Shown here: one piece after another, positions 15,911 to 60,440 of the stretch
Layout of the letters: every line of letters starts with the position of its first letter
How positions within the stretch are numbered: the stretch's first letter is position 1
Made by a program: the position numbers and the translations under genes
Source of the DNA: Anolis carolinensis
Taxonomy: Eukaryota
DNA: 64,000 nt
Reading direction: 5' to 3'
Assembly: GCF_035594765.1 (NCBI RefSeq)
Contig: NC_085845.1
Coordinates: forward strand, 65,962,024-66,026,023
Notes under the pieces: generated by a model
Databases searched by the model: none
The model's input: the letters and a program-made list of their open reading frames with translations, nothing else
What the model was told of the DNA's origin: nothing

Positions 15911-17574
15911 TGACACAACAACATTGTATGACACTTCAAACAAGATAGATATGCTGGATTTTGTATCACAGAATCACAAGTCGAACACTTCCCAAGCGTT
16001 TAGGACTTTGTGATGTATTTTCGGATGATGCGTGAAGATCCCAGTAGGGTGGCCTTTTGCAGTTGGCAGATTGTAATTTTGTCAATGTCTGTTGCTTCCA
16101 AATGCCGTCTGACATATTTTGGCACGGCACCCAATGTGCCGATCACCACCGGGACCACCAGTACTGGTTTCTGCCAGAGTCTTTGAAGTTAAATCTTGAG
16201 GTCCTGATAGCAGCTGAGTTTTTCCTGTTGTTTTTCATCAATGCGACTGTCACCAGGTATGGCGACATCAATAATCCAAACCTTTTTCTTTTCCACAACT
16301 GTGATGTCTGGTGTGTTGTGTTCCAGAACTTTGTCAGTCTGGATCGAAAGTCTCACAGTATCTTTGCATGTTCATTTTCCATTATTTTTGCAGGTGTGTG
16401 ATCCCACCAGTTCTTTACTGCTGGGAGGTGGTACTTGAGGCATAAGTTCCAATGAATCATTTGGGTCACATAGTTGTGCCTCTGTTTGTAGTCTGTCTGT
16501 GCAATTTTCTTACAGCCGCTGAGGATATGAACAATGGTTTCATTGGTTTCCTTGCACAGTCTGCATTTTGGGTCATCAGCTGATTTTTCGATCTTGGCCT
16601 TAATTGCATTTGTTCTGATGGCTTGCTCCTGGGCTACAAGGATCAGGCCTTCTGTCTTCTTCTTCAGTGTCCTATTCCTGAACCAGAGCCAGGTCTTCTC
16701 CTTGTCAGCTTTTCCTTCAATTTTGTCAAGGAACTTTCCATGCAATGTTTTGTTGTGCCAGCTGTCAGCTTTAGTTTGTAGTGCGGTTTTCTTGTACTGA
16801 TTTTTTGTCTGCTGTGCTTTAAGGAGTTTCTGATTTTTGACTTCAATCAAAGCAGGTTCTTCACTTTGCTTTACATATTCTGCCAGGGCATGTTCTTCTT
16901 CTTTGACTGCTTGTTTTACTTATAAGAGTCCTCTGCCACCTGATATTCTAGGCAGATATAGCCGGTCAACATCCTTGCGAGGGTGTAATGAATGATGAAT
17001 GGCCATGAGTTTTCTTGTTTTTCTGTCCAAATTGTCCAGTTCCACCTGTGTCCAATTTATAATGCCAGCAGTATATCTTATGACAGGTATGACCCAGGTG
17101 TTTATGGCCTTGTGGTGTTGCCTCCATTGAGGTTGCTTTTGAGAATTTTTCTGACCCTTTGTGTGTATTCTTTGCTGACCACAGTTTTCACATGTTCATG
17201 CTTGATGTTGTCCAGCTGTAATATGCCCAGATATTTATAGGCCTCTGGCTGGTGACAGTTTATTGTTTGGCCATTAGGCATATTTATGCCCTCACTTTCA
17301 ATGATTTTTCCCTTCTTCAATGCCACTGTCGAACATTTGTCCAAACCAAACTCCATGTTGATATCAGTAATTAAAATTCGGACAGTGTTAGTCAGAGACT
17401 GGATTTCAGTTTCAGTTTTCCCATACGGCTTCAGGTCATCTATGTACATCAGATGCGAAATTTTGTGAGATTTCTTAGATATTTGATAGCCGAGATTTGT
17501 TTTTTGTAAGATTGTTGACAGAGGGATCATGGCAATAATGAAAAGCAGAGGGGACAATGAGTCTCCCTGGAAAA
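15911..17574 (-). mobile_element. R4/Dong LINE (RLE endonuclease), 5'-truncated, frameshifted
   Basis: QGDSLSP, LMYIDDLK, YKYLG, CCHC knuckle, RHN motif; flanked by (TAA)n, the known Dong target. Confidence 0.9.
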
Positions 17575-18824: not shown

Positions 18825-20446
18825 GTGAGATTACTCTGTTTACACTTCAAAAGAAAAATGTTTGTCCAACAGAGTGGTGAATATATCTAGTTTTGAATCC
18901 TAATGTTTTGTTTGGGTTGTTTACACTGTTTAAACCTGAGGTTGCAGAGAGTATCTAGTTTTGAATAATACTGGTTTGTCTGGGGTGGAATTGTAATAAC
19001 TTGGAAGCTTTTCTTTGTATTCCACAGAAAGATAATAGCACCTTTGAAAAGTTTGGTTCCTTGCAGCCTGTTCTGATTCCATGCACATTATATATGATTC
19101 TGTTCTTAATGCCCTTTTCCAAGAACAGAAGGGGATAAGGATAGGAGATAAGGCGATAATTTTCTTTTCAAAAGAAGTAACAAGTAATTTTTGTAAATTT
19201 CTTTTCACTGCAAGAAAGTCTTCAAAACACCCAGATATCAATGCTTTTCTTCAAGTCAGAACATATTAGGCACAAAATTCATATGTGGTTCTTTGGCAAA
19301 GAGTATTTTTATGAAGAAATGTCATTTAAGTGTAGAAACAACTATTTTATGTTCAGATAATCCTTTGTGTGTGTTTTGCTTTTTGCAAAATAACCTTATG
19401 TAAACTAGTCCAAAAATGCTAAGGTTCAACTCGTCAAGGTTTCTTGATCCTCAGAAACATTTTGTCTGCTTTTCAAGCATTCTTTCTGTTCCTAAAAGGG
19501 AAATGATTAAACATTAACACATAAGTTTTTGCCAGAAAACGGTCTAACGGATGTAAAGATTGTCAGAATTGCAACTCTGTTCAGTTGGTCATTTCCCCAT
19601 TACATCTGAACTTAGATGTAAAATACAAGGTGCACAGAAAAATAGTTCCCAAACCTGGATCTGAAAAATAATGTCTGACAGTGCCTTTTTCTTGTTTATA
19701 CTCAACTTGTTTGTACATAACTATTGCACACAAGAGCAAGTCTGCATTCAAAGTTAATGGAAATCAATTGAAGCATAATCAATTTCAGTATTCAAGGAGA
19801 TGAAGATATCAGTATAATTGATGGGCAGAGAAGGCAACATTTCCTTAAACTAAAAAATGGCTATTTAACATTTCCTGTTATTCTTTTCACTGTTATAATT
19901 ATTTTGTCATGCATCTTCAGTTACGCAAGTAAATGTTCATGTTCTAATTCTCTACCAATGGAACAGAAAATACCAGAGGTAGAGGAATAAAGACTTCAGC
20001 AAGTGAACTAAAAAGAGGAGAAACTTTACAATAAATTTCAGACCGACAGTTATACAGAGCTAAGACCAAGGATATACTGAAAATCCCTGAACATAAAGTA
20101 ATCCAAAAATGAACAAAAATACTCTCTGATCCCTTCACAATTGCTTTGTCCTTGTGAGACTGAATTATATTATCAAAGATCTCATATATTTAATGAACTA
20201 CCTTGAAAAGCTTGTGTGAAGGTGTTATACTCAAGATGTGTTCCAAAAATGGTATAATATTTTAGTTTGTTTTTTTTACAGGACGGCAGTGTACTTGCCT
20301 ATCTCATAATTAATTGGGTTATATTTTAATAGTTTGTCTTTTGTTATACATTAAGTGTAATTGAAAAGATGTTTGAGCAAAGTCTTCCTTATTTTTATAT
20401 TGTCATTGTTGTTATCATTGACACCATCATTATTGCTTCCTTGCAG

Positions 20447-21060
20447 TCTCTCTGCCAGTACATTATCTGTCTCTTCAGGGAGCAGCCTGGGATCCCTGGC
20501 GTCCAGTCAGGGGTCCCTAAACACATCCAGCCGGGGATCACTTAATTCACTTAGCTCTACAGATCTGTATTATAACCAAGTGGATCAGCCTACAGACTTA
20601 GACTATCAATATAAGCTGGACTTCTTATTACAAGAGAAATGTGGTTACATTCCTTCGGGCCCCATCACCACAATTCATGAAAACGAAGTCGTGAGTTCGC
20701 ATGGGAGAATGGAATACAGTGGTTCTTCTGGCTCTTTGGCTGCAAGCCATGCTCCCAAATTAACTGAACCCCCAAAATCTGTGACATCCCTGTCTTCAAG
20801 ATCTTCCCTTTCCTCCTTGTCTCCTCCTGGATCACCTTTGGCTTTGGAAGGCACGTTCTCAGTGCCTCCTCAAGACTCCCCATTGCATCACCTCACCACA
20901 GATTTCGAAGACTGTGATTTACCCAGTGACTTTGCCAGCATTAGCCTCTGTGGCAACCAAATCTTGGACTCGGAAGCCAGAGTATCCTCTCAGTCACTGG
21001 CGGATGATAAAGACCTCAATGAAAGTCTTAACCAGACCATCTCACCTCCGAGAAATACAG
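20447..21060 (+). CDS. WWC2: WWC2 large Ser-rich exon, 614 bp
   Basis: ttgcag|T acceptor, G|gtaaaa donor; SLSASTLSVSSGSSLGSL...SRSSLSSLSPPGSP; lies within ORF 20361..21224. Confidence 0.96.
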
Positions 21061-22519
21061 GTAAAAAATGTTATAAGATCAAACCTACATATTTCGATGT
21101 TGGTATGTCTCATTGCTCAGACTTTACAGAGATTGCTCTTAAAACAAATATGTACCATGAACATGCAGATAGTTTTTTTAAAAAAAACCCAGAATGGATG
21201 TGCTTTTGTCAGCATGGGTTGTAAGTAGCTCTAAAAGTAGGCATTCTGTCGGGATTGCATCTAGAGCTGGGATGAATAGATGTTTCCTTTGATTTTTAGT
21301 GTACATTCTCTGTGTGAAAATACATTGAAATGGTCAGTCTGTTTACTTTATGGGCCATATGAATGTAATCAAAGGTGGTTGTTATTGAGATAGGATGAAA
21401 CAGGAGGACAAATAATACAAGGTGGACAGAAAAATGCTCAGGAGAATCGATCTACGGGAAGCATCTATTGCAAGCCAATAGTGGAGGGGGAAGGAAAAGG
21501 GGAGGGAGAAAAATGTGGCAATACTCTTATAACTGATTTTTATATTGGCACGAGTTTTTGTGGATATAAGTATACGTCTTCTGATGCAGTACAAAATGAG
21601 ATTAAGGCCTCAGATATAAAGTAAATGTATACTGTTGTAGAGGAGTGGGATAAAATGTAATAGTACCCAGAATGATACTACTCATGTCCCTTGCCTTAAA
21701 TTTTCAAAGGACTGGGTAAGATGATACTGGTCTTCCAAATATTTACAGTGGTCCGTTAATTTTGATGTGTGAAAGCAATACATCTGCTTACCAAAAGTCA
21801 GCTTCTCTGGGTTCAAAACTCTCTCTCAAAATTCCTTTTTTATGTGTTCAGTATAAAGGACTCTTGTATTATGTAGCATGCCATGAAATCATTGCTTGTG
21901 CTTATACTTCTACTAATGGATTGAAATTTGTGAATATAATTCAGTACCACTCTCTCTTTCAAGTCTGCAATTTATTTCTTCAAAGACTGTACTGTATGTC
22001 CAGGAAAATTGAAAGGATCTAAAACCATTTTGTGAATCATTTTGTGTTTTCAGCCAGTCTTGTAGTAGAGAGCTTCTGGATATCAATTTTGCCTTGCTAA
22101 TTTGATTTTTCATGTCCTTAAATGTGTATTGTAGTTTGAAAAATACCTGTTGTACATCCAAGAATTTGGAGCCTTTGTCTTATGGATCTGAGCAGATGCA
22201 ATTGTATCAGAGGATTTGACTGTAAACAATAGATTTAGTACTCTGGATAATAAGACCTACCCATAAAATAAGCTGTAGCAGGATTTCTAAGGATTTGCAC
22301 AATATAGGCCATACCCCGAAAATAAGACTTAATGATAGGTGTGGCTATGCAGCATGCGAGGTTGGCTCCCCCTGTCAGGTCCTGGTCATTCCGTTCGTGC
22401 TGCAAACTGAGCCATAAAGGGAGACGTAGAAAGTGAAAGTCTCCTCAGTGCGGAGCAGGACGCTCTGCTTTAGGTATTGTGTGTCCTCAGGAAGAAGAAG
22501 TAAAGCTATGGCTCAGCAT

Positions 22520-22640: not shown

Positions 22641-24499
22641 GGATAGGGGAAAGCTTCAGCAGTATATTTAGCAGTCAGTGCTGTTTAGAAGCCCATTCTG
22701 CACAGTGGTGTCAAGAAAATTAATTTGTTGTGTGGATTGTTCCATGCTCAGTTGGATGGTAGGGTCGTTGTTGAAATCCTGGTTGAACTTTTCAAGTACA
22801 GTATATCCAAGGGGTGAGACAACAGGATGTGAGAGAAATCTATCCCTAGGAAGAGAAGTTCACTCCTTAAAGAGTTACCATGGGGAAAAGGTATCTCCAC
22901 TGAAGCCTTATCATCAATCCTTGTTTCTACAACAAGCCATTTTTTTTTCAAAATCCTGTTATCACAGGAACAAAAAGTGAGGTGAAATCTTCTGAATAAG
23001 AGCACAGACAGCAAAACGAACATCACAGGAGTGTTAATGTACCAGTTTCAACTTACATATAAATTCAACTTAAGAAAAAACCTACAGAACTGAACTTGTT
23101 CATAACTTGGGACTGCCTGCAATTGTTTTCCATAAGGCTAAATTACAAGGATGTCATCAAAAGATTACAGGCAATGGTTTGGAGGTGAATATGCTGAGGG
23201 AGCATTGTTCCAAGTCAGCCATAAAGATGTCTGCATTCTGTGATTCCATGAGGATGTCCACAACAGTGCCACTGACTTGGATGTACATGTTACAGGTTGA
23301 GTATCTTATATCCATAATTCTAAAATATGCAGATGCATGTTCTGGCTTTCTGAAGGGGTTCGTGTAAAGTTCTTTTTCTTGCTCTTGGAAAAATATTTGT
23401 GCTGTTGATGCAGTGACCATTGTCATGTGGTGCAGACTGAGGTGATGCTTCTGAGCTGTTGTTCTGACTGGTGTTTCTTGAAGCATAGCTCGTGGAAATA
23501 TTCCTTGAGGTATAGATAGTAGAAGAAAGTCTCCAGATTGCCACAGAACTGAATTATGTACGTAGGTTTTGATGGGCAGAAAGATAGTCCTTGTGAAAGG
23601 ATACATAGATAGACTCAAGCCAAGGCTCATTTGAATGTCGCAATGTGTGCTTTGATCACCATTATGAAAGAACTCTTTGAAAGCTTGGATCCTTAGTTGG
23701 ACATAATTTACCCCATATCTTTATCATCTGCTTGTTTTTTCCTAGTTATAGATGGTGAGGTTTTCATATCTCTTTGTAGTCTTCGGTATTGTAGTGTCTT
23801 GAAAAGTCATTGTAATGCTTGCTGATTTGTTTGAGCAAGGAGCTAAAACTCTTTAGAAACACTCGCCTTATGATGTTTGTTAAATTAACTGATCAAACAA
23901 GCTAAAATTTCGGGGCCGCGCAATGTCAGAAGCTCACTTAATTCTCATGAGTCTATTATAAATGTATTTGTTTACCAGCATCAAGAACTATATTTGCATT
24001 TGCAAGACTGAAATGATTTGCTGCTATTAGATGTGGCGAGGGATAGTTTGTTTTCAAAGGTTTGCCTCCAAAGGATAAAGAAAGGGCAAGAAATGCACAT
24101 GGTAGGAAATGCAATAATTCTTTAAGCAATTGGTATATCACTTAGGGGGGAGATCGGCTGTTTGGTGACTCCTACTGATATCTTCTTATGCGTCACCTGA
24201 ATATTTTTCATTAAGAACCTTGATTCTTTCCGTTCTTTGGTGAAGCTATGTGACAAAGCCTGTCCTCCTTTCTTCCCTCCTTGGCCTTCCTACATACAGT
24301 ATTGCTGCCACCTTCTGGTTCAGGTATTTATTTTTCACATACATTTTCCCTTTATTGGGATACTATTTTATGCAGAAATAGGTAGACTTTAATGTTCACC
24401 CAAGCAATTTCCAGTGCAATTTACAAAGAATAAAATGAAAGATCAAAGAAAATAATGTCCAGTCCTTATTACAGTAATTAAAACTCTGTTAAAAGGGCT

Positions 24500-24564
<65 letters not shown>

Positions 24565-24566
<2 letters not shown>

Positions 24567-25315
24567 GGAAACAGAAGGCCTGATCCTTGCAGCCCAGGAG
24601 CAAGCCATCAGAACAAATGCAATTAAGGCCAAGATCGAAAAATCAGCTGATGACCCAAAATGCAGACTGTGCAAGAAAGCTGACGAAACCATTGATCATA
24701 TCCTCAGCTGCTGTAAGAAAATCGCACAGACAGACTACAAACAGAGGCACAACTATGTGGCCCAAATGATCCATTGGAACTTATGCCTCAAGTACCACCT
24801 CCCAGCAGAAAATAACTGGTGGGATCACAAACCAGCAAAGGTCGTGGAAAATGAGCATGCAAAGATACTGTGGGACTTCCGAATCCAGACTGACAAAGTT
24901 CTGGAACACAACACACCAGACATCACAGTTGTGGAAAAGAACAAGGTTTGGATAATTGATGTCGCCATCCCAGGTGACAGTCGCATTGATGAAAAACAAC
25001 AGGAAAAACTCAGCCGCTATCAGGACCTCAAGATTGAACTTCAAAGACTCTGGCAGAAACCAGTACAGGTGGTCCCGGTGGTGATGGGCACACTGGGTGC
25101 CGTCCCAAAAGATCTCAGCCGGCATTTGGAAACAATAGACATTGACAAAATCACGATCTGCCAACTGCAAAAGGCCACCCTACTGGGATCTGCACACATC
25201 ATCCGAAAATACATCACACAGTCCTAGACACTTGGGAAGTGTTCGACTTGTGATTTTGTGATATGAAATCCAGCATATCTATCTTGTTTGCTGTGTCATA
25301 CAACGTTGTTGTGTC

Positions 25316-29996: not shown

Positions 29997-30958
29997 TATT
30001 TTATTTATTGTGTCAGAAGCGAATTGATGGTACAGTGATCATGTATTTAAAATCACAAACAAAGTTGAAAACTTGGCATTATACTAAATGTCCTTTGACC
30101 AGTAGCTGGCTACTTGGAGTGCCTCTGGTGCCACTGTAAGAAGGTTCTCCATTGTGCATATGTTGGTGGTCTGCATTGTAGTAGGTGGTCTGTGGTTTGT
30201 TCTTCTCCACGCTCGCATGTCGTGGACTCCAATTTGTAGCCCCATTTCTGAAGATTGGCTGTGCACCTTGTGGTGCCAAAGCACAGTCTGTTCAGCACTT
30301 TCCAAGTCACCCAGTCTTCTGTGTGCCCAGGGGGGAACCTCTCATCTAGTATGAGCCATGGATTGAAGTTGTGGATATTTAGCCTGCCACTTTTGGACTC
30401 TCGCTTGCTGAGGTGTTCCTGCAAGTATCTCTGTAGATCTTAGGAAGCTATTTCTTGATTTAAGGTTTTGGTGTGCTGGCTGATATCTGAACAGATATCC
30501 GATACGCCAGAGATGTCACTTCCTTGCTCCTTTCATTATTGGCTGCTATTTCCCGATGGATGTCAGGTGGTTCAATACCGACTAAACAATATAATTTCTC
30601 CAGTGGTGTGGGGCGTAGACATCCTGTAATAATGCGGGATGTCTCATTAAAAGCCACATTCACTGTTTTAACATGGTACGATGTATTCCACACTGGGCAT
30701 GCGTATTTAGCAGCAGAGTAGCAAAACACAAGGGCAAATGTCTTCACTGAGTCTGGTTGTGATCCCCAGGTTGTGCCAGTCAGCTTTTGTATAATATAAT
30801 TTCTAGCACCCACTTTTTGCTTGATAGTCAAGCAGTGCTTCTGAAAAACCTCCCCACAGGATCGTAACACATCCAGGTGTCCCCTGGGCAACGTCTTTGT
30901 TGATGGCTGATTCTTTCACACCAGAAGTGACTTGCAGCATGCAACCAACCAAACAAAC
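29997..30958 (-). mobile_element. Vingi (Ingi-related) LINE: 3' part on the - strand plus an inverted 5'-end segment (about 30845-30958)
   Basis: Degraded ORF (LTGTTWG, YACPVW, RIITGCLRPTP, WKVLNRL, KWGY...CE.GEEQT.DHLLQC); tail ...cgcttctgacacaataaata; TSD AAATTATTGGGT at 29985-29996 and 30959-30970. Confidence 0.8.
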
Positions 30959-35472: not shown

Positions 35473-36224
35473 TACTATGCTATTGCCCCCAAAATAAGAC
35501 CTTACCATAAAATAGGCCCTAGCATGATTCTTGTAATATCAACCCTACCCCAAAAATAAGCCCCAGTTAAGATCATCAGCCAGATGGACGGGTTTAGTAT
35601 GTCTGTTGCAACACACGACAGACGATTGAATTTAAAAATAATAGTATAATATTAATCTATAATTAAATATAAATAAATAATATTATTGGGTTGCTGTGAG
35701 TTTTCTAGGCTGTATGGCCATGTTCCAGCAGCATTCTTTCCTGACATTTCACCCACATTTATGGCAGGCATCCTCAGAACTTGTGAGGTTTGTAGGAAAC
35801 TAGGCAAGTGGGGTTTATATATCTGTGAAAGGTCCAGGGTGGGAAAAAGAACTCTTGTCTGTTGGGGGCAAGTGTGATCACTTTAATTAGCATTGAAAAG
35901 CCTTGCAGCTTCAAAGCCTTGCTGATTCCTGCCTGAGGGAATCCTTTGTTGACTGATGAGATAATCAAGTTAATTGACATAATATTATGATAATGTTCCA
36001 GAAGAAGATGGCATGTCTGTATTTGAATAAAGGTAGATAGTTGTACGTGAATCAATGTAGAACTTTGTACATCAATAAATGAATACATGTAGATTGTTGT
36101 ACATCAATAAATGCAGATTGCCGTACATGGAAAAAGCAAGACATTCCCTGAAAATAAGCTCTAATGAGTCCTTTGGAGCAAAAATTAATATAAGACCTGG
36201 TCTTATTTTCGGAGAAATGTAGTA
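35473..36224. mobile_element. Tc1/mariner-type (Tc2/pogo-like) MITE hosting the Penelope fragment; related piece at about 22245-22330
   Basis: ta..cccccaaaataagacc / ggtcttattttcggagaaatgtagta termini; internal degenerate repeats of about 24 bp. Confidence 0.55.
35688..35951 (-). mobile_element. Older Penelope 3' fragment with a decayed hammerhead (35740-35780)
   Basis: Aligns to 41891-42150; hammerhead GAAACGTC has become GAAATGTC by CpG decay. Confidence 0.85.
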
Positions 36225-40476: not shown

Positions 40477-41942
40477 TAGGTGGTGGTGGAGGAGGAATCC
40501 ATCACACACATTGATTGATCAGTTAGTGTAGACATGGCCAAAGTTGCCTAGTCTGAAAGAAGTTCTTTCTTTAAGTCACCTGCCAGGAGACGTTCCCCGG
40601 CCTTGTTGTAGATTTTGTATGTAAACGGACTAGACCCGAAACAATCCCCATAATGTAGAGTATCTATTCACCACAGAGCTGTGGCTTCATCTGTCCATCC
40701 ACAGCTCAGCGAAAAAGGTGTACCAGGCAAAATTGTCAAATTTATCTTGAATAATAATATCATGATAAGAACCTGATGGCTTTTATTTTCTTTATACTTC
40801 TGTTACCCCAGCAGTTGCTTGGGAGCATATTGATTAATAACTGTAGACACAGCCAGAGTGTAAAGTAATGGTGCCTGAGGCATGCTCACAATTGGGTTCT
40901 CAAAGCCTCCAGATAGAAGGCTGATTTTTCTTTCCTTGCATATAAAACCGGTTTCCTTCTCCTGAAGAAGATGGACTGAGGCCAACTATATTTTGCCCCA
41001 GGCATCAACTTAGCCAGTACCCTCTCTTGCATAGATCTATTATATTTAATTAGAGATTTAAAATATAGACAGGGTTCTCCCCACCCCACCCCCGCATTAT
41101 CTGTCTGAGCTTCAATATTTATAGATTACTCACTTTTAGGAAGTACACTCATTAAGTCCTATGGCCCTTATACTGAGGAATCAAGAACAACATTGTGCCT
41201 TGAATTGCTTTGCTCTTTCTGTCCTACAAGCTTAAGTGCTCCCCCCAAAGTGTATTCTAAACCAGCATCATTTCTGTGCCATCTGCTCCAAACAAATACT
41301 TAGAGGGCTTTTAATCTCTTTCTATGGCTTGTCTTCTCCGTCATGCAAATAATGTAATCAGTGTTACACAGAGACATTTATGCATATAAATAAATCCACT
41401 TGATGCAATTGCCCACTCCTGTAGACACTTTTGAGAAGTGGAAGAATTGGTTAGGCGGTTGAGCCTCCAAATAGAGTGCCCCCATTATACATTATATGTG
41501 CAGTGGAATGGAGAAGGACAAATCCAGTAAGTATATGAACTTAGCCTGTGTTTACTTCAGTTTGAATATTGCTGTTTTACTTGAACCAAAAAGGTGTGCA
41601 GGTATAGTGGATGTGTTTAATTGCAATGAGATAAGAGGCATTTGGAGAGCCAATGTAAGACAATGTTCCATGGCAAAACTACTTCAACATATCTAAACTA
41701 TTTCATCATTCTTTACATTAAAGAGTGACATAAATGCAATTTTAGAGTGATCTCCCACGGAGTCATAATATTGGCTTAGCAAGTTCACATCATGTCACTC
41801 AGGGCCCTTCCACACAGCCATATAACTCAGAATATCAAGGCAGAAAATCCACTATATGTGTTGTCGAAGGCTTTCATGGCCAGAATCACAGGGTTGTTGT
41901 ATGTCTTTCGGGCTGTGTGGCCATGTTCCAGAAGCATTCTCT

Positions 41943-41983
41943 CCTGACGTTTCGCCCACATCTATGGCAGGCATCCTCAGAGG
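41943..41983 (-). ncRNA. Minimal type I hammerhead ribozyme, Penelope 3' repeat
   Basis: CCU CUGAGGA U GCCUGC-loop-GUGGGC GAAAC GUC^AGG: hammerhead core, 6-bp helix II, palindromic ACGU in place of helix III, as described for PLE hammerheads. Confidence 0.85.
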
Positions 41984-42101
41984 TTGTGAGGTATGGATAA
42001 ACTAAGTCAGGAAAGGAAAGAATATATATCTGTGTAGAGTCCAAGGTGTGGCAAGAGTTCTTTGTCACTGGGAGCCAGCATTAATGTTTCAGTTAATCAC
42101 C

Positions 42102-44612
42102 CTAATTGGCACTGGAAATGTTTTGTCCCTTGCCTGGGGGCATCCTTTGTTCAGTCAAGTCCTCATTGTGTTGGTTCCCATCTACTGTTTTGATTTTGGA
42201 GTTTTGTAATACTGGTAGCCAGATTTTGTTCATTTTCATGGTTTCTTCCTTTCTGTTGAAGTTGTCCACATGCTTGTGGATTTCAATGGCTTCTCTGTGT
42301 AGTCTGACATGATAGTTGTTAGAATGGTCCAGCATTTTTGTGTTCTCAAATAGTATTCTGTGTCCAGGCTGGTTCATCAAATGCTCTGCTATGGCTGATT
42401 TCTCTGGTTGAATTAGTCTGCAGTGCCTTTCATGTTCTTTGACTCTTGTTTGGGCGCTGCGTTTGGTGGTCCCTATGTAGACTTGTCCACAGCTGCATGG
42501 TATCCGGTAGACTCCTGCAGAAGAGAGAGGATCCCTCTTGTCCTTCGCTGACCGTAGCATTTGTTGGATTTTCTTCGTGGGTCTGTAGATAGTTTGTAGG
42601 TTGTGCTTCTTCATCAGCTTCCCTATGCGGTCAGTAGTTCCCTTGATGTATGGTAAGAACACCTTTCCTCTGGGTGGATCTTTGTCTTGACTCTCATGGC
42701 TTGTTCTTGGCCTTGCAGCTCTTCTGATGTCTGTGGTGGAGTATCCATTGGCCTGTAGAGCCCAGTTTAGGTGGTTGAGTTCACCTTGGAGGAGGTGAGG
42801 TTCGCAGATTCTTTGTGCACGGTCTGTCAGGGCTTTGATTGTGCTCCTTTTTTGACTTGGGTGATGGTTGGAGTTTTTATGAAGGTATCTATCTGTATGT
42901 GTAGGTTTTCTGTAAACTGTGTGGCCCAATTGTTGATTGGGTTTGCGGATGACCAGAACATCTAGAAATGGCAGTTTTCCTTCCTTTTCTTTTTCCATGG
43001 TGAATTGGATGTTTGGGTGGATGCTGTTAAGATGGTCCAGGAACTTGCTGAGTTCTTCCTCTCCATGGCTCCAAATTGTGAAGGTGTCATCTACGTATCT
43101 GAACCAAACAGTTGGCTTTTTTGGTGCTGTTTCTAGGGCCTGTTTTTCAAAGTATTCCATATAGAAATTTGCTACTACTGGGCTGAGAGGGCTCCCCATG
43201 GCCACTCCATCCTTCTGTTCATAGAATCCAGTGTCCCACTGAAAGTAGCTAGTGGTGAGGCAATGGTGAAACAGGGCTGTGATGTCTTCTGGGAAGTTTT
43301 GTTTGATTAGTGTGAGGGTGTCAGCTACTGGGACTTTGGTAAAAAGGGACACCACATCAAAGCTGATCAGGATGTCCTTGGTGCTTAGATTGAGGTTGCT
43401 GATCTTTTCTATAAAGTGTGTAGAGTCCTTGATATAATGTGCAGTGAGCCCAATGTGGGTTTGTAGCTGTGTAGCCAGAAATTTTGCCAGGTTGTAAGTC
43501 GGCGATCCAATGGCACTTACAATGGGTCTGAGTGGGATGGAGTCCTTGTGGATTTTGGGGAGTCCGTAAAGCCTGGGTGGGAGGGCTTCTGATTTGCACA
43601 GCTGTTGGCGTATGTCAAAGTTAATGGAGGAGTTCTTGATTAGAGTGTTAGTTTTTCTGGTGATTTTGTTAGTGGGGTCTTGTTTCAGTTTCTTGTAAAT
43701 TGTGGGATCTAGAAGTTGTCTGATTTTTTCTTTGTATTGTTTTGTTTCCATGATTACTGTGGCATTCCCCTTGTCAGCTGGAAGAATGATGATTTCAGGA
43801 TCTGAGTTGAGATCTTTGATGGCCTGTCTTTCTTTTCTCGTTATGTTGCTGGGGGGGAGTTTTGCATTTCTCAGGATCCTTGCTGTTTCCATTCTTACCT
43901 CCTCTGCTTCTTCCTCAGGGAGCTGATAAATTGCTGATTCAACATTGGCAATGATGTTTTCTACTGGGATCCTGGTGGTGGTGACTGCAAAATTTCCTCC
44001 TTTTTCTAGAATGGATACTTGGTCTTCAGTGAGTTGTCTGTCTGTCAGGTTGATGATGGTCCGTGATTTATCCAGTTCTGGCTTTGGCTGTTGCTTACGG
44101 CATTTGTCAAATTTTTGTTTTTGTCTCTTGGTGTGGAGAACCATGTCTTTCTCCATTTTCTTGTAGGTAAGGCTGTCTATTTTATCCCAGTCCTGGGTAT
44201 TCATCTTTTGGCTGATGTTGATGTGGAGGTGCAGCAGTTCTTTGTCTGTGTTTGCGAGTTCTTTACGGATGGTGTGGATTCTCTCTCTCAAGAGGTTGCG
44301 TTCCAGGCGGTTGTAAATGCGACGAGCCTGTGGTGTTTTGAAGGTCCTTTTGGCTGCAAAAAATTGTGGGATGGTATCTGTGTCTCTGCAGCGTAGAAGG
44401 AAGGTCAGGGAGCACAGTAGATGTGCTTTCCTGGTCCTTAGTTTTTCCAATCTCCGTGTGTCTTGGAACAATTTCTCCCCGTAGAGATGTTCAATGTGTT
44501 GTCGAAGGCTTTCACGGCCAGAATCACAGGGTTGTTGTATGTCTTTCGGGCTGTGTGGCCATGTTCCAGAAGCATTCTCTCCTGACGTTTCGCCCACATC
44601 TATGGCAGGCAT
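42102..44612 (-). CDS. Penelope-like polyprotein: reverse transcriptase + GIY-YIG endonuclease, 836 aa, intact
   Basis: RT motifs YGLPKIHK, LRPIVS, SFDVVSLFT, GVAMGSPLSP, RYVDD, LPFLD; endonuclease GVYRIPCSCGQVYIG...SAIAEH...REAIEI; no stops or frameshifts. Confidence 0.96.
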   Translation of the reverse strand: MPAIDVGETSGENASGTWPHSPKDIQQPCDSGRESLRQHIEHLYGEKLFQDTRRLEKLRTRKAHLLCSLTFLLRCRDTDTIPQFFAAKRTFKTPQARRIYNRLERNLLRERIHTIRKELANTDKELLHLHINISQKMNTQDWDKIDSLTYKKMEKDMVLHTKRQKQKFDKCRKQQPKPELDKSRTIINLTDRQLTEDQVSILEKGGNFAVTTTRIPVENIIANVESAIYQLPEEEAEEVRMETARILRNAKLPPSNITRKERQAIKDLNSDPEIIILPADKGNATVIMETKQYKEKIRQLLDPTIYKKLKQDPTNKITRKTNTLIKNSSINFDIRQQLCKSEALPPRLYGLPKIHKDSIPLRPIVSAIGSPTYNLAKFLATQLQTHIGLTAHYIKDSTHFIEKISNLNLSTKDILISFDVVSLFTKVPVADTLTLIKQNFPEDITALFHHCLTTSYFQWDTGFYEQKDGVAMGSPLSPVVANFYMEYFEKQALETAPKKPTVWFRYVDDTFTIWSHGEEELSKFLDHLNSIHPNIQFTMEKEKEGKLPFLDVLVIRKPNQQLGHTVYRKPTHTDRYLHKNSNHHPSQKRSTIKALTDRAQRICEPHLLQGELNHLNWALQANGYSTTDIRRAARPRTSHESQDKDPPRGKVFLPYIKGTTDRIGKLMKKHNLQTIYRPTKKIQQMLRSAKDKRDPLSSAGVYRIPCSCGQVYIGTTKRSAQTRVKEHERHCRLIQPEKSAIAEHLMNQPGHRILFENTKMLDHSNNYHVRLHREAIEIHKHVDNFNRKEETMKMNKIWLPVLQNSKIKTVDGNQHNEDLTEQRMPPGKGQNISSAN

Positions 44613-44621
44613 CCTCAGAGG
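44581..44621 (-). ncRNA. Minimal type I hammerhead ribozyme, Penelope 5' repeat; contains the ORF ATG
   Basis: Identical motif, 2638 nt upstream of the copy at 41943 on the - strand. Confidence 0.85.
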
Positions 44622-45650
44622 TTGTCCAATTCACCATGGAAAAAGAAAAGGAAGGAAAACTGCCATTTCTAGATGTTCTGGTCATCCGCAAACCCAATCA
44701 ACAATTGGGCCACACAGTTTACAGAAAACCTACACATACAGATAGATACCTTCATAAAAACTCCAACCATCACCCAAGTCAAAAAAGGAGCACAATCAAA
44801 GCCCTGACAGACCGTGCACAAAGAATCTGTGAACCTCACCTCCTCCAAGGTGAACTCAACCACCTAAACTGGGCTCTACAGGCCAATGGATACTCCACCA
44901 CAGACATCAGAAGAGCTGCAAGGCCAAGAACAAGCCATGAGAGTCAAGACAAAGATCCACCCAGAGGAAAGGTGTTCTTACCATACATCAAGGGAACTAC
45001 TGACCGCATAGGGAAGCTGATGAAGAAGCACAACCTACAAACTATCTACAGACCCACGAAGAAAATCCAACAAATGCTACGGTCAGCGAAGGACAAGAGG
45101 GATCCTCTCTCTTCTGCAGGAGTCTACCGGATACCATGCAGCTGTGGACAAGTCTACATAGGGACCACCAAACGCAGCGCCCAAACAAGAGTCAAAGAAC
45201 ATGAAAGGCACTGCAGACTAATTCAACCAGAGAAATCAGCCATAGCAGAGCATTTGATGAACCAGCCTGGACACAGAATACTATTTGAGAACACAAAAAT
45301 GCTGGACCATTCTAACAACTATCATGTCAGACTACACAGAGAAGCCATTGAAATCCACAAGCATGTGGACAACTTCAACAGAAAGGAAGAAACCATGAAA
45401 ATGAACAAAATCTGGCTACCAGTATTACAAAACTCCAAAATCAAAACAGTAGATGGGAACCAACACAATGAGGACTTGACTGAACAAAGGATGCCCCCAG
45501 GCAAGGGACAAAACATTTCCAGTGCCAATTAGGGTGATTAACTGAAACATTAATGCTGGCTCCCAGTGACAAAGAACTCTTGCCACACCTTGGACTCTAC
45601 ACAGATATATATTCTTTCCTTTCCTGACTTAGTTTATCCATACCTCACAA

Positions 45651-45691
45651 CCTCTGAGGATGCCTGCCATAGATGTGGGCGAAACGTCAGG
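45651..45691 (+). ncRNA. Minimal hammerhead ribozyme in the inverted copy, sense to WWC2 pre-mRNA
   Basis: cctctgaggatgcctgccatagatgtgggcgaaacgtcagg. Confidence 0.82.
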
Positions 45692-45754
45692 AGAGAATGC
45701 TTCTGGAACATGGCCACACAGCCCGAAAGACATACAACAACCCAATCCACTATA

Positions 45755-59790: not shown

Positions 59791-60197
59791 ATTGTTTTTT
59801 ATGGGGACAGTATTGGGAGGATATACATTTGCATCCTAAATCTGTAATAGAAAGTGTTTTTTAATAGAACATGTTGTTGAATTAGTTCTTAACTGACAAT
59901 GAATGATTTTTGTCTTTTAAAAAACTCAACTTATTAGGCAAACTTCACAAATAGTCCAGTTTGAGAAATCTAAGTAAAGAGTAGTGATCCTGTAGCATTT
60001 AGCAGAGTTACAACTTTATTTAAGTAAATCCTACATATCTGCAAACATGGTGTGTACAAATATTTTATATGTATGCACACACAAAAATAATTTGAGATTA
60101 TTCAGGTAAGTACATTAACAGAACCTAGTGATGTTTTCATTCATATTCTGTTCTACTTTATTTGATTTTTTCCCCAAAACATTCTTAAATACCATAG

Positions 60198-60440
60198 CCT
60201 GCTTGCCAGCCCAGTATGCGGCGAGCGACTCGGGAGCACCTTGTCCGCACCTCTCTTGACTTGGAGCTGGATCTCCAGGCTTCTCGGACACGGCAGAGTC
60301 GCCTGGATGATGAGCTACAGATGCTTCGCGATCTTAAGCAGAGGCTCGAGGAGATGAAAGCCAGGGGAAAGACCGAGCTTCCTCCCTGTGTTTTAGAGGA
60401 TGAAAGATTCCAAAAGCTCTTGAAACAAGCTGAAAAACAG
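60198..60440 (+). CDS. WWC2: WWC2 exon, 243 bp, PACQPSMRR...RTSLDLELDLQAS...FQKLLKQAEKQ; coiled coil
   Basis: catag|C acceptor, CAG|gtacaa donor; 81 codons. Confidence 0.94.

Follow-up and report, generated by a model that had tools for sequence, protein, structure and literature searches.

The start codon of a Penelope-like element of Anolis carolinensis lies inside its hammerhead ribozyme, upstream of the predicted cut, as in related arthropod elements

If the start codon of a retroelement lies inside a self-cleaving ribozyme and upstream of the cleavage site, cleavage would part the message from the codon that opens it. A 64,000-nt stretch of the Anolis carolinensis genome (the window in the rest of the text) raises the question of how the protein of such an element is translated, and whether the arrangement is maintained in its relatives. 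The region spanning 41856-45743 of the window is a single Penelope-like insertion (Table 1), whose 836-aa ORF codes for a protein sharing 99% identity with an A. carolinensis protein entry. Like other members of the Penelope/Poseidon clade, the element contains a single ORF with a reverse transcriptase (RT) plus a GIY-YIG endonuclease at the C-terminal end, along with partial-tandem repeats (pLTR) with a tail and the inverted 5′-truncated copy that is frequent in the clade; a target duplication is present as well. This domain set is common to its relatives, in whose alignment the GVY..C.C..YIG stretch is invariant or nearly so. Judged by its sequence, the element is Poseidon_Ac (PAc), the Penelope-like element of A. 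carolinensis: compared by eye, the published PAc RNA template (PMC11167929) has the same hammerhead and the same ORF start with few changes, including the AUG at stem II and the cut 26 nt after the codon. The ends of the insertion at +119 and +84 relative to the AUG match two RT starts or tail boundaries published for PAc (+119 and about +85). The window copy differs from the published one by a 3′-UTR variant and by its 5′ repeat, which is truncated at −13 by the inverted copy. The latter corresponds to the 3′ part of the element and abuts the 5′ end of the ORF unit at 44625. The two copies of the direct repeat differ by a single base, at +98. From cut to cut the PAc unit of the window measures 2638 nt, and the insertion amounts to one unit plus 132 nt, spanning both cut sites.

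Table 1. Features of the PAc insertion, in window coordinates; signed positions are relative to the A of the AUG.
Feature	Position	Strand	Remarks
Penelope-like RT + GIY-YIG ORF, 836 aa, intact	42102..44612	-	ORF list, RVT_1 match, relatives
Start codon ATG (hammerhead A9 + inserted U + G10.1)	44610..44612	-	
5′ minimal type I hammerhead, truncated at −13	44581..44625	-	
Predicted cleavage after GUC, 29 nt from A of ATG	44583..44584	-	cut 44584/44583
5′ copy of 132-nt direct repeat	44494..44625	-	spans −13 to +119 relative to AUG
3′ copy of 132-nt direct repeat, hammerhead complete	41856..41987	-	AUG 41974, cut 41946/41945, ends at +119
Inverted 5′-truncated copy, 1119 nt, one mismatch	44625..45743	+	ends at +84
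Third hammerhead, inside inverted copy	45651..45691	+	AUG 45660
In-frame TAG, 10 codons upstream of AUG	45630..45632	+	complete repeat
TATA-like box, 54 nt upstream of AUG	45606..45612	+	complete repeat; consensus match
Target-site duplication, left, 10 nt	41846..41855		
Target-site duplication, right, 10 nt	45744..45753		

The initial annotation of this locus had placed the ATG (44612-44610) at the junction between the hammerhead core and stem II, the cut after GUC 29 nt downstream (44584/44583), an in-frame TAG 10 codons ahead of the ATG in the complete repeat, and no further in-frame Met for about 136 codons. All four positions were confirmed: the TAG (45630-45632) is exactly 10 codons away, and after the ATG no in-frame Met occurs before residue 137. 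The core occupies 44618-44612, with GAAA at 44591-44588, and core A6 supplies the A at −3 of the start codon. G10.1 of the ATG is also the first base of stem II (44610-44605 with 44597-44592), and stem III is palindromic. Clipping of the 5′ hammerhead at 44625 (−13) by the inverted copy has left stem I with 3 bp (44621-44619 with 44583-44581) and removed the upstream TATA-like box. With such a short stem I, this copy may not cut, and transcription by a TATA-dependent route may also fail, the inversion having cost it the TATA region. The AUGs first met after the cut (+38 and +51) are out of frame. The annotation's premise that a cleaved monomer lacks its start codon holds as sequence logic, as does the corollary that in a circle the 3′ repeat would give the AUG back.

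The overlap between AUG and ribozyme in PAc is already known. Frangieh 2024 (PMC11167929) reported that the ORF starts at hammerhead stem II, with cleavage 26 nt after the start codon. Cleavage in vitro, shown for the consensus, was seen only when PAc protein was added, and the smallest RNA with activity extends over the first 172 nt of the ORF. Insertion in vitro is normal with core mutants and mainly uses uncut RNA as its substrate, and RNA-seq reads with an end at the cut were not seen on either side. That paper proposes no translational role or control for the hammerhead, and conservation beyond Anolis is not discussed. The initial annotation knew of no description of the coupling of ATG and ribozyme, but for the overlap itself there is one; no paper was found that links the AUG to a switch. 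A literature search combining Penelope, hammerhead, AUG and translation initiation, with subscription journals mostly outside its coverage, likewise returned nothing. What appears new is the conservation within one branch, together with two alternative positions of the AUG, both described below.

The hammerhead fold is real. The motif has the CUGANGA and GAAA cores, an NUH triplet and covarying stems I and II of a minimal type I hammerhead, and over 10 related elements eight of nine pairs were altered on both sides (covariation score 0.85 compared to 0.25 for shuffled sequences, with the structure derived from the same sequences on which it was scored). It also shares an extra base at 9/10.1, a G10.1-C11.1 pair, a palindromic stem III and the presence of one motif per repeat with the minimal dimeric type I hammerheads of metazoan Penelope elements, among which PMC4209133 gives the 9/10.1 base as a conserved feature. 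The results and discussion of that article leave start codons inside the motif unmentioned and propose a circular template. No family reached the gathering score in an Rfam scan of the window; minimal Penelope hammerheads were originally described with a relaxed descriptor. In free folding of the monomer and of the dimer the hammerhead was not the minimum-energy fold, an outcome that would be consistent with a need for folding help and is not evidence either way.

To follow the AUG across elements, relatives were collected, the hammerhead was located in each and the elements were placed on an RT tree. PAc falls within a branch in which every other named element comes from an arthropod, with 56-62% identity to the closest ones. 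DNA was sought for 12 proteins; P0006 and P0025, which count as protein-only support, were excluded from the branch count; L115 (3′ copy unlinked to the ORF), L059 (one-base shift) and L048 (truncated) were also left out of the counts. Among the 11 traceable elements of the branch, nine have an AUG before the cut that shares the frame of the ORF and reads through to the conserved domain: the window element, L001 (ladybird), L002, L003, L042, L116, L117, L121 (cockroach) and L120 (bee). The A9-U-G AUG, 29 nt before the cut, serves in eight of them. In the bee element (L120:2998-3031) the inserted base is A, stem II with its loop is one base shorter, and the start is an AUG inside the catalytic core (A6-U-G), 31 nt before the cut; a second Met lies in loop II, likewise before the cut. 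The cockroach element was read from its intact 3′ repeat, as a C-to-A change at the cleavage base of the 5′ repeat (L121:2950-2990) creates a stop in the hammerhead frame.

Distances between the AUG and the conserved domain (81, 84, 84, 84, 90, 96 and 102 nt) are every one divisible by three, across spacers that are only 41-60% identical. The chance of an open in-frame spacer would be about 0.07-0.14 per element for independent elements, and shared ancestry means that these are not fully independent. Selection also bears on the count, as L001, L002, L003, L117 and L120 were chosen after the motif had been seen in the protein. L042, which came from an unbiased scan, fits the in-frame pattern; of five candidate counter-examples, L116 and L121 fit, L115 probably does, and L118 and L122 do not. 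Six of the nine in-frame elements have no in-frame Met between the cut and the conserved domain, and the other three (L001, L116 and L121) have a spare Met after the cut. Unit lengths are multiples of three in L002 (2616 nt) and L121 (2700 nt) and are not in the window element, L001 and L120; since they are not uniformly so, they reveal no constraint for rolling translation round a circle.

The closest non-Anolis relatives of the PAc ORF (42102-44612), namely P0004, P0005, P0006 and P0009, are 56-62% identical to it, the named ones coming from beetles, and fish Poseidon is distant from PAc on the tree. This pattern suggests a possible horizontal transfer between arthropods and anoles; no paper on such a transfer was found. 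A scan of viral contigs contained no relatives.

Outside the branch, a hammerhead could be traced in 12 elements, 10 of which have their start after the cut. The same A9-U-G AUG is present in six outside elements and opens the ORF in none of them. Fish Poseidon (goby L119; proteins P0121-P0131) shares the hammerhead type and an upstream TATA-like box with PAc, and L119 also has the A9-U-G AUG; unlike in PAc, this AUG opens a 4-codon upstream ORF (uORF) in another frame, and the main ORF starts after the cut. In the sister elements L069 and L072, stem III contains an AUG that is in frame and precedes the cut by 5 nt; they would represent a second route to an AUG before the cut. They form a separate clade in which the only in-frame AUG (L069:263-354, L072:9-94) lies in the stem III palindrome and is followed by a hydrophobic N-terminal stretch. 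Among approximately 140 relatives with an intact N-terminus, most begin with Met at the conserved domain, according to gene-caller starts. The position of the AUG changed at least four times on an RT tree that predates the reading of L120-L122; as this tree is unrooted, gain and loss are indistinguishable. The initial annotation had asked whether the hammerhead AUG stays in frame across squamate and fish families. The frame is kept in the arthropod-plus-anole branch and differs in a fish, the goby, an outcome that the annotation had itself named as counting against its model. With 9 of 11 elements of one branch on one side and 10 of 12 outside elements, fish included, on the other, the coupling between AUG and ORF is specific to the branch and not general among Penelope elements. 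Penelope-type loci were also detected in bacterial genome bins (L084-L114), where they are probably contamination from host animals.

A TATA-like box is found 44-93 nt upstream of the AUG in eight relatives, and its match to the consensus leads us to infer a transcription start near −20. No out-of-frame AUG separates this predicted start from the hammerhead AUG in the in-frame elements. As the box lies upstream of the hammerhead, no other AUG probably precedes this one on a capped, uncut mRNA. We slightly favor the explanation that the PAc RT-endonuclease truly starts at the hammerhead AUG and is translated, with no circle needed, from a linear mRNA that is capped and uncleaved. The mRNA would start in the upstream repeat, about 20 nt before the AUG. 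Metazoan Penelope hammerheads often carry an extra base between A9 and G10.1. A U in this place automatically creates an AUG, with a purine at −3, as a by-product of the ribozyme, and this AUG would usually be the first of the mRNA. Most lineages would have left this AUG as a short uORF, or have another base in its place, and start after the cut. The arthropod-plus-anole branch would have taken it as the start codon, such that the ribozyme overlaps the first 30 codons or so and the frame comes under selection. Translation would proceed without ligation or circle. Cleavage, seemingly rare and dependent on the protein, would strip cap and AUG together and end the life of the RNA as a message, the loss of the AUG adding little to the loss of the cap.

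Assembled contigs from sequencing runs, which are not on record as RNA, indicate that the PAc family is high-copy and diverse. Among the 15 joints listed from these contigs, seven touch −12 to −20, and none of those listed touches the cut; related subfamilies diverge at about −18, and the joints at −12 to −20 were thus given little weight. We also considered insertions ending at the predicted transcription start and dropped this idea, as relatives reach −60 or further, beyond the TATA-like box. Regarding known promoters, that of Drosophila Penelope is located in the repeat and is TATA-less in D. virilis, where the element has an intron (PMC2377424).

The favored explanation leaves out part of the picture, since strong covariation implies that the ribozyme fold is under selection and that cleavage does something further. 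A protein-triggered off-switch, compatible with the favored explanation up to the purpose of the cut, is a possible answer that we hold only tentatively. The PAc protein would bind the first 172 nt of its ORF, assist folding and cleavage, and thereby strip the cap and AUG from its own mRNA, resulting in negative feedback or in a hand-over from translation to a later step, again with no circle needed. The dependence of cleavage on PAc protein and the extent of the minimal active RNA, which takes in the first 172 nt of the ORF, both argue for it. So do the six in-frame elements lacking an in-frame Met between the cut and the conserved domain, and the occurrence of an AUG before the cut in three registers (A9-U-G; A6-U-G in the core of the bee element; stem III in L069 and L072). 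That the core AUG of the bee element and the stem III AUG of L069 and L072 all precede the cut hints at selection for an AUG in this position. However, cap loss alone would silence the RNA whether or not the AUG was lost, a spare Met follows the cut in three of the nine in-frame elements, and 10 of 12 outside elements start after it; cut ends are also absent from RNA-seq, although cut products may decay fast. We consider it possible, if rather unlikely, that the AUG has been kept upstream of the cut in the arthropod-plus-anole branch, and separately in L069 and L072, because an RT-triggered cut silences its own mRNA.

The initial annotation had proposed instead that cleavage and ligation act as a translational switch, with cleavage at both repeats followed by ligation into a 2638-nt circle that contains the AUG, and with translation confined to such circles and to uncut RNA. 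The unit does close seamlessly, restoring hammerhead and AUG, and the extent of the insertion, one unit plus 132 nt through both cut sites, is what a circular template allows. Ligation of Penelope RNA into circles that serve as templates was proposed by Cervera and de la Peña 2014 (PMC4209133), and circle formation is reported for retrozymes, whose hammerheads are also of type I. Yet an uncut tandem transcript accounts for the insertion equally well, there is no report of a circle or a cut end for PAc, and a circle would lack a cap, with no internal entry site known. Furthermore, the start of most relatives follows the cut, so that no rescue is called for. Given that no reads end at the cut, that core mutants insert in vitro and that a capped uncut transcript would supply the AUG, the ligation switch finds no support and we consider it improbable.

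Least probable of all is a start elsewhere, on a spliced exon or at a near-cognate codon after the cut (e.g. ATA, codon 25) with the protein beginning at the conserved domain: conservation of the protein does begin near residue 30, where most of the approximately 140 relatives with an intact N-terminus start, and the upstream TAG, which follows a pyrimidine run, could be a splice acceptor comparable to the end of the D. virilis intron at helix I given in PMC4209133, but splicing at this acceptor, itself upstream of the AUG, would leave the AUG in place, none of the joints listed is intron-like, and it is hard to see why else nine elements with diverged spacers should all have a frame that is open from the hammerhead AUG onward. 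The corresponding segment of the window (45606-45640, plus strand), with its TATA-like box, pyrimidine run and TAG, lies just upstream of helix I and could form a 3′ splice site.

A 5′ self-cleaving ribozyme is tied to the translation start in two other systems, the HDV-like ribozymes of non-LTR elements, reported in Ruminski 2011, and the type I hammerheads found in RNA viruses of fungi and plants (PMC13725137), and in both of them cleavage promotes translation. Coordinates are given for one case, in which cleavage falls 7 nt upstream of the start codon. In PAc, by contrast, the ORF itself contains the cut, which would stop translation. An off-switch, if true, would be a form of ribozyme-based autoregulation opposite to the HDV-like and viral cases, and a protein-gated ribozyme feedback loop in a eukaryotic retroelement. 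The role of the hammerhead in Penelope-like elements is an open question in the literature, on which the close relatives of PAc provide a natural experiment, as the same ribozyme AUG is a start codon in some, a short uORF in others and absent from the rest. With PAc protein already purified and core mutants available, the off-switch is easy to test.

Older fragments of the PAc repeat, 82-87% identical, occur elsewhere in the window (35688-35802 and 2312-2384), with a degenerate hammerhead core at 35777. Exon-like stretches on the plus strand at 20361-21224 and about 60187-60440 show a putative resemblance to a gene of the WWC/KIBRA family. Pfam and PDB searches of these stretches gave no match; if the resemblance holds, the PAc element would lie in or near a WWC/KIBRA-like gene, with its ORF antisense. 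ORFs of other non-LTR retrotransposons are present as fragments at 16353-17557, 24499-25227 and 30110-30891, the second of which has a weak zf-RVT match.
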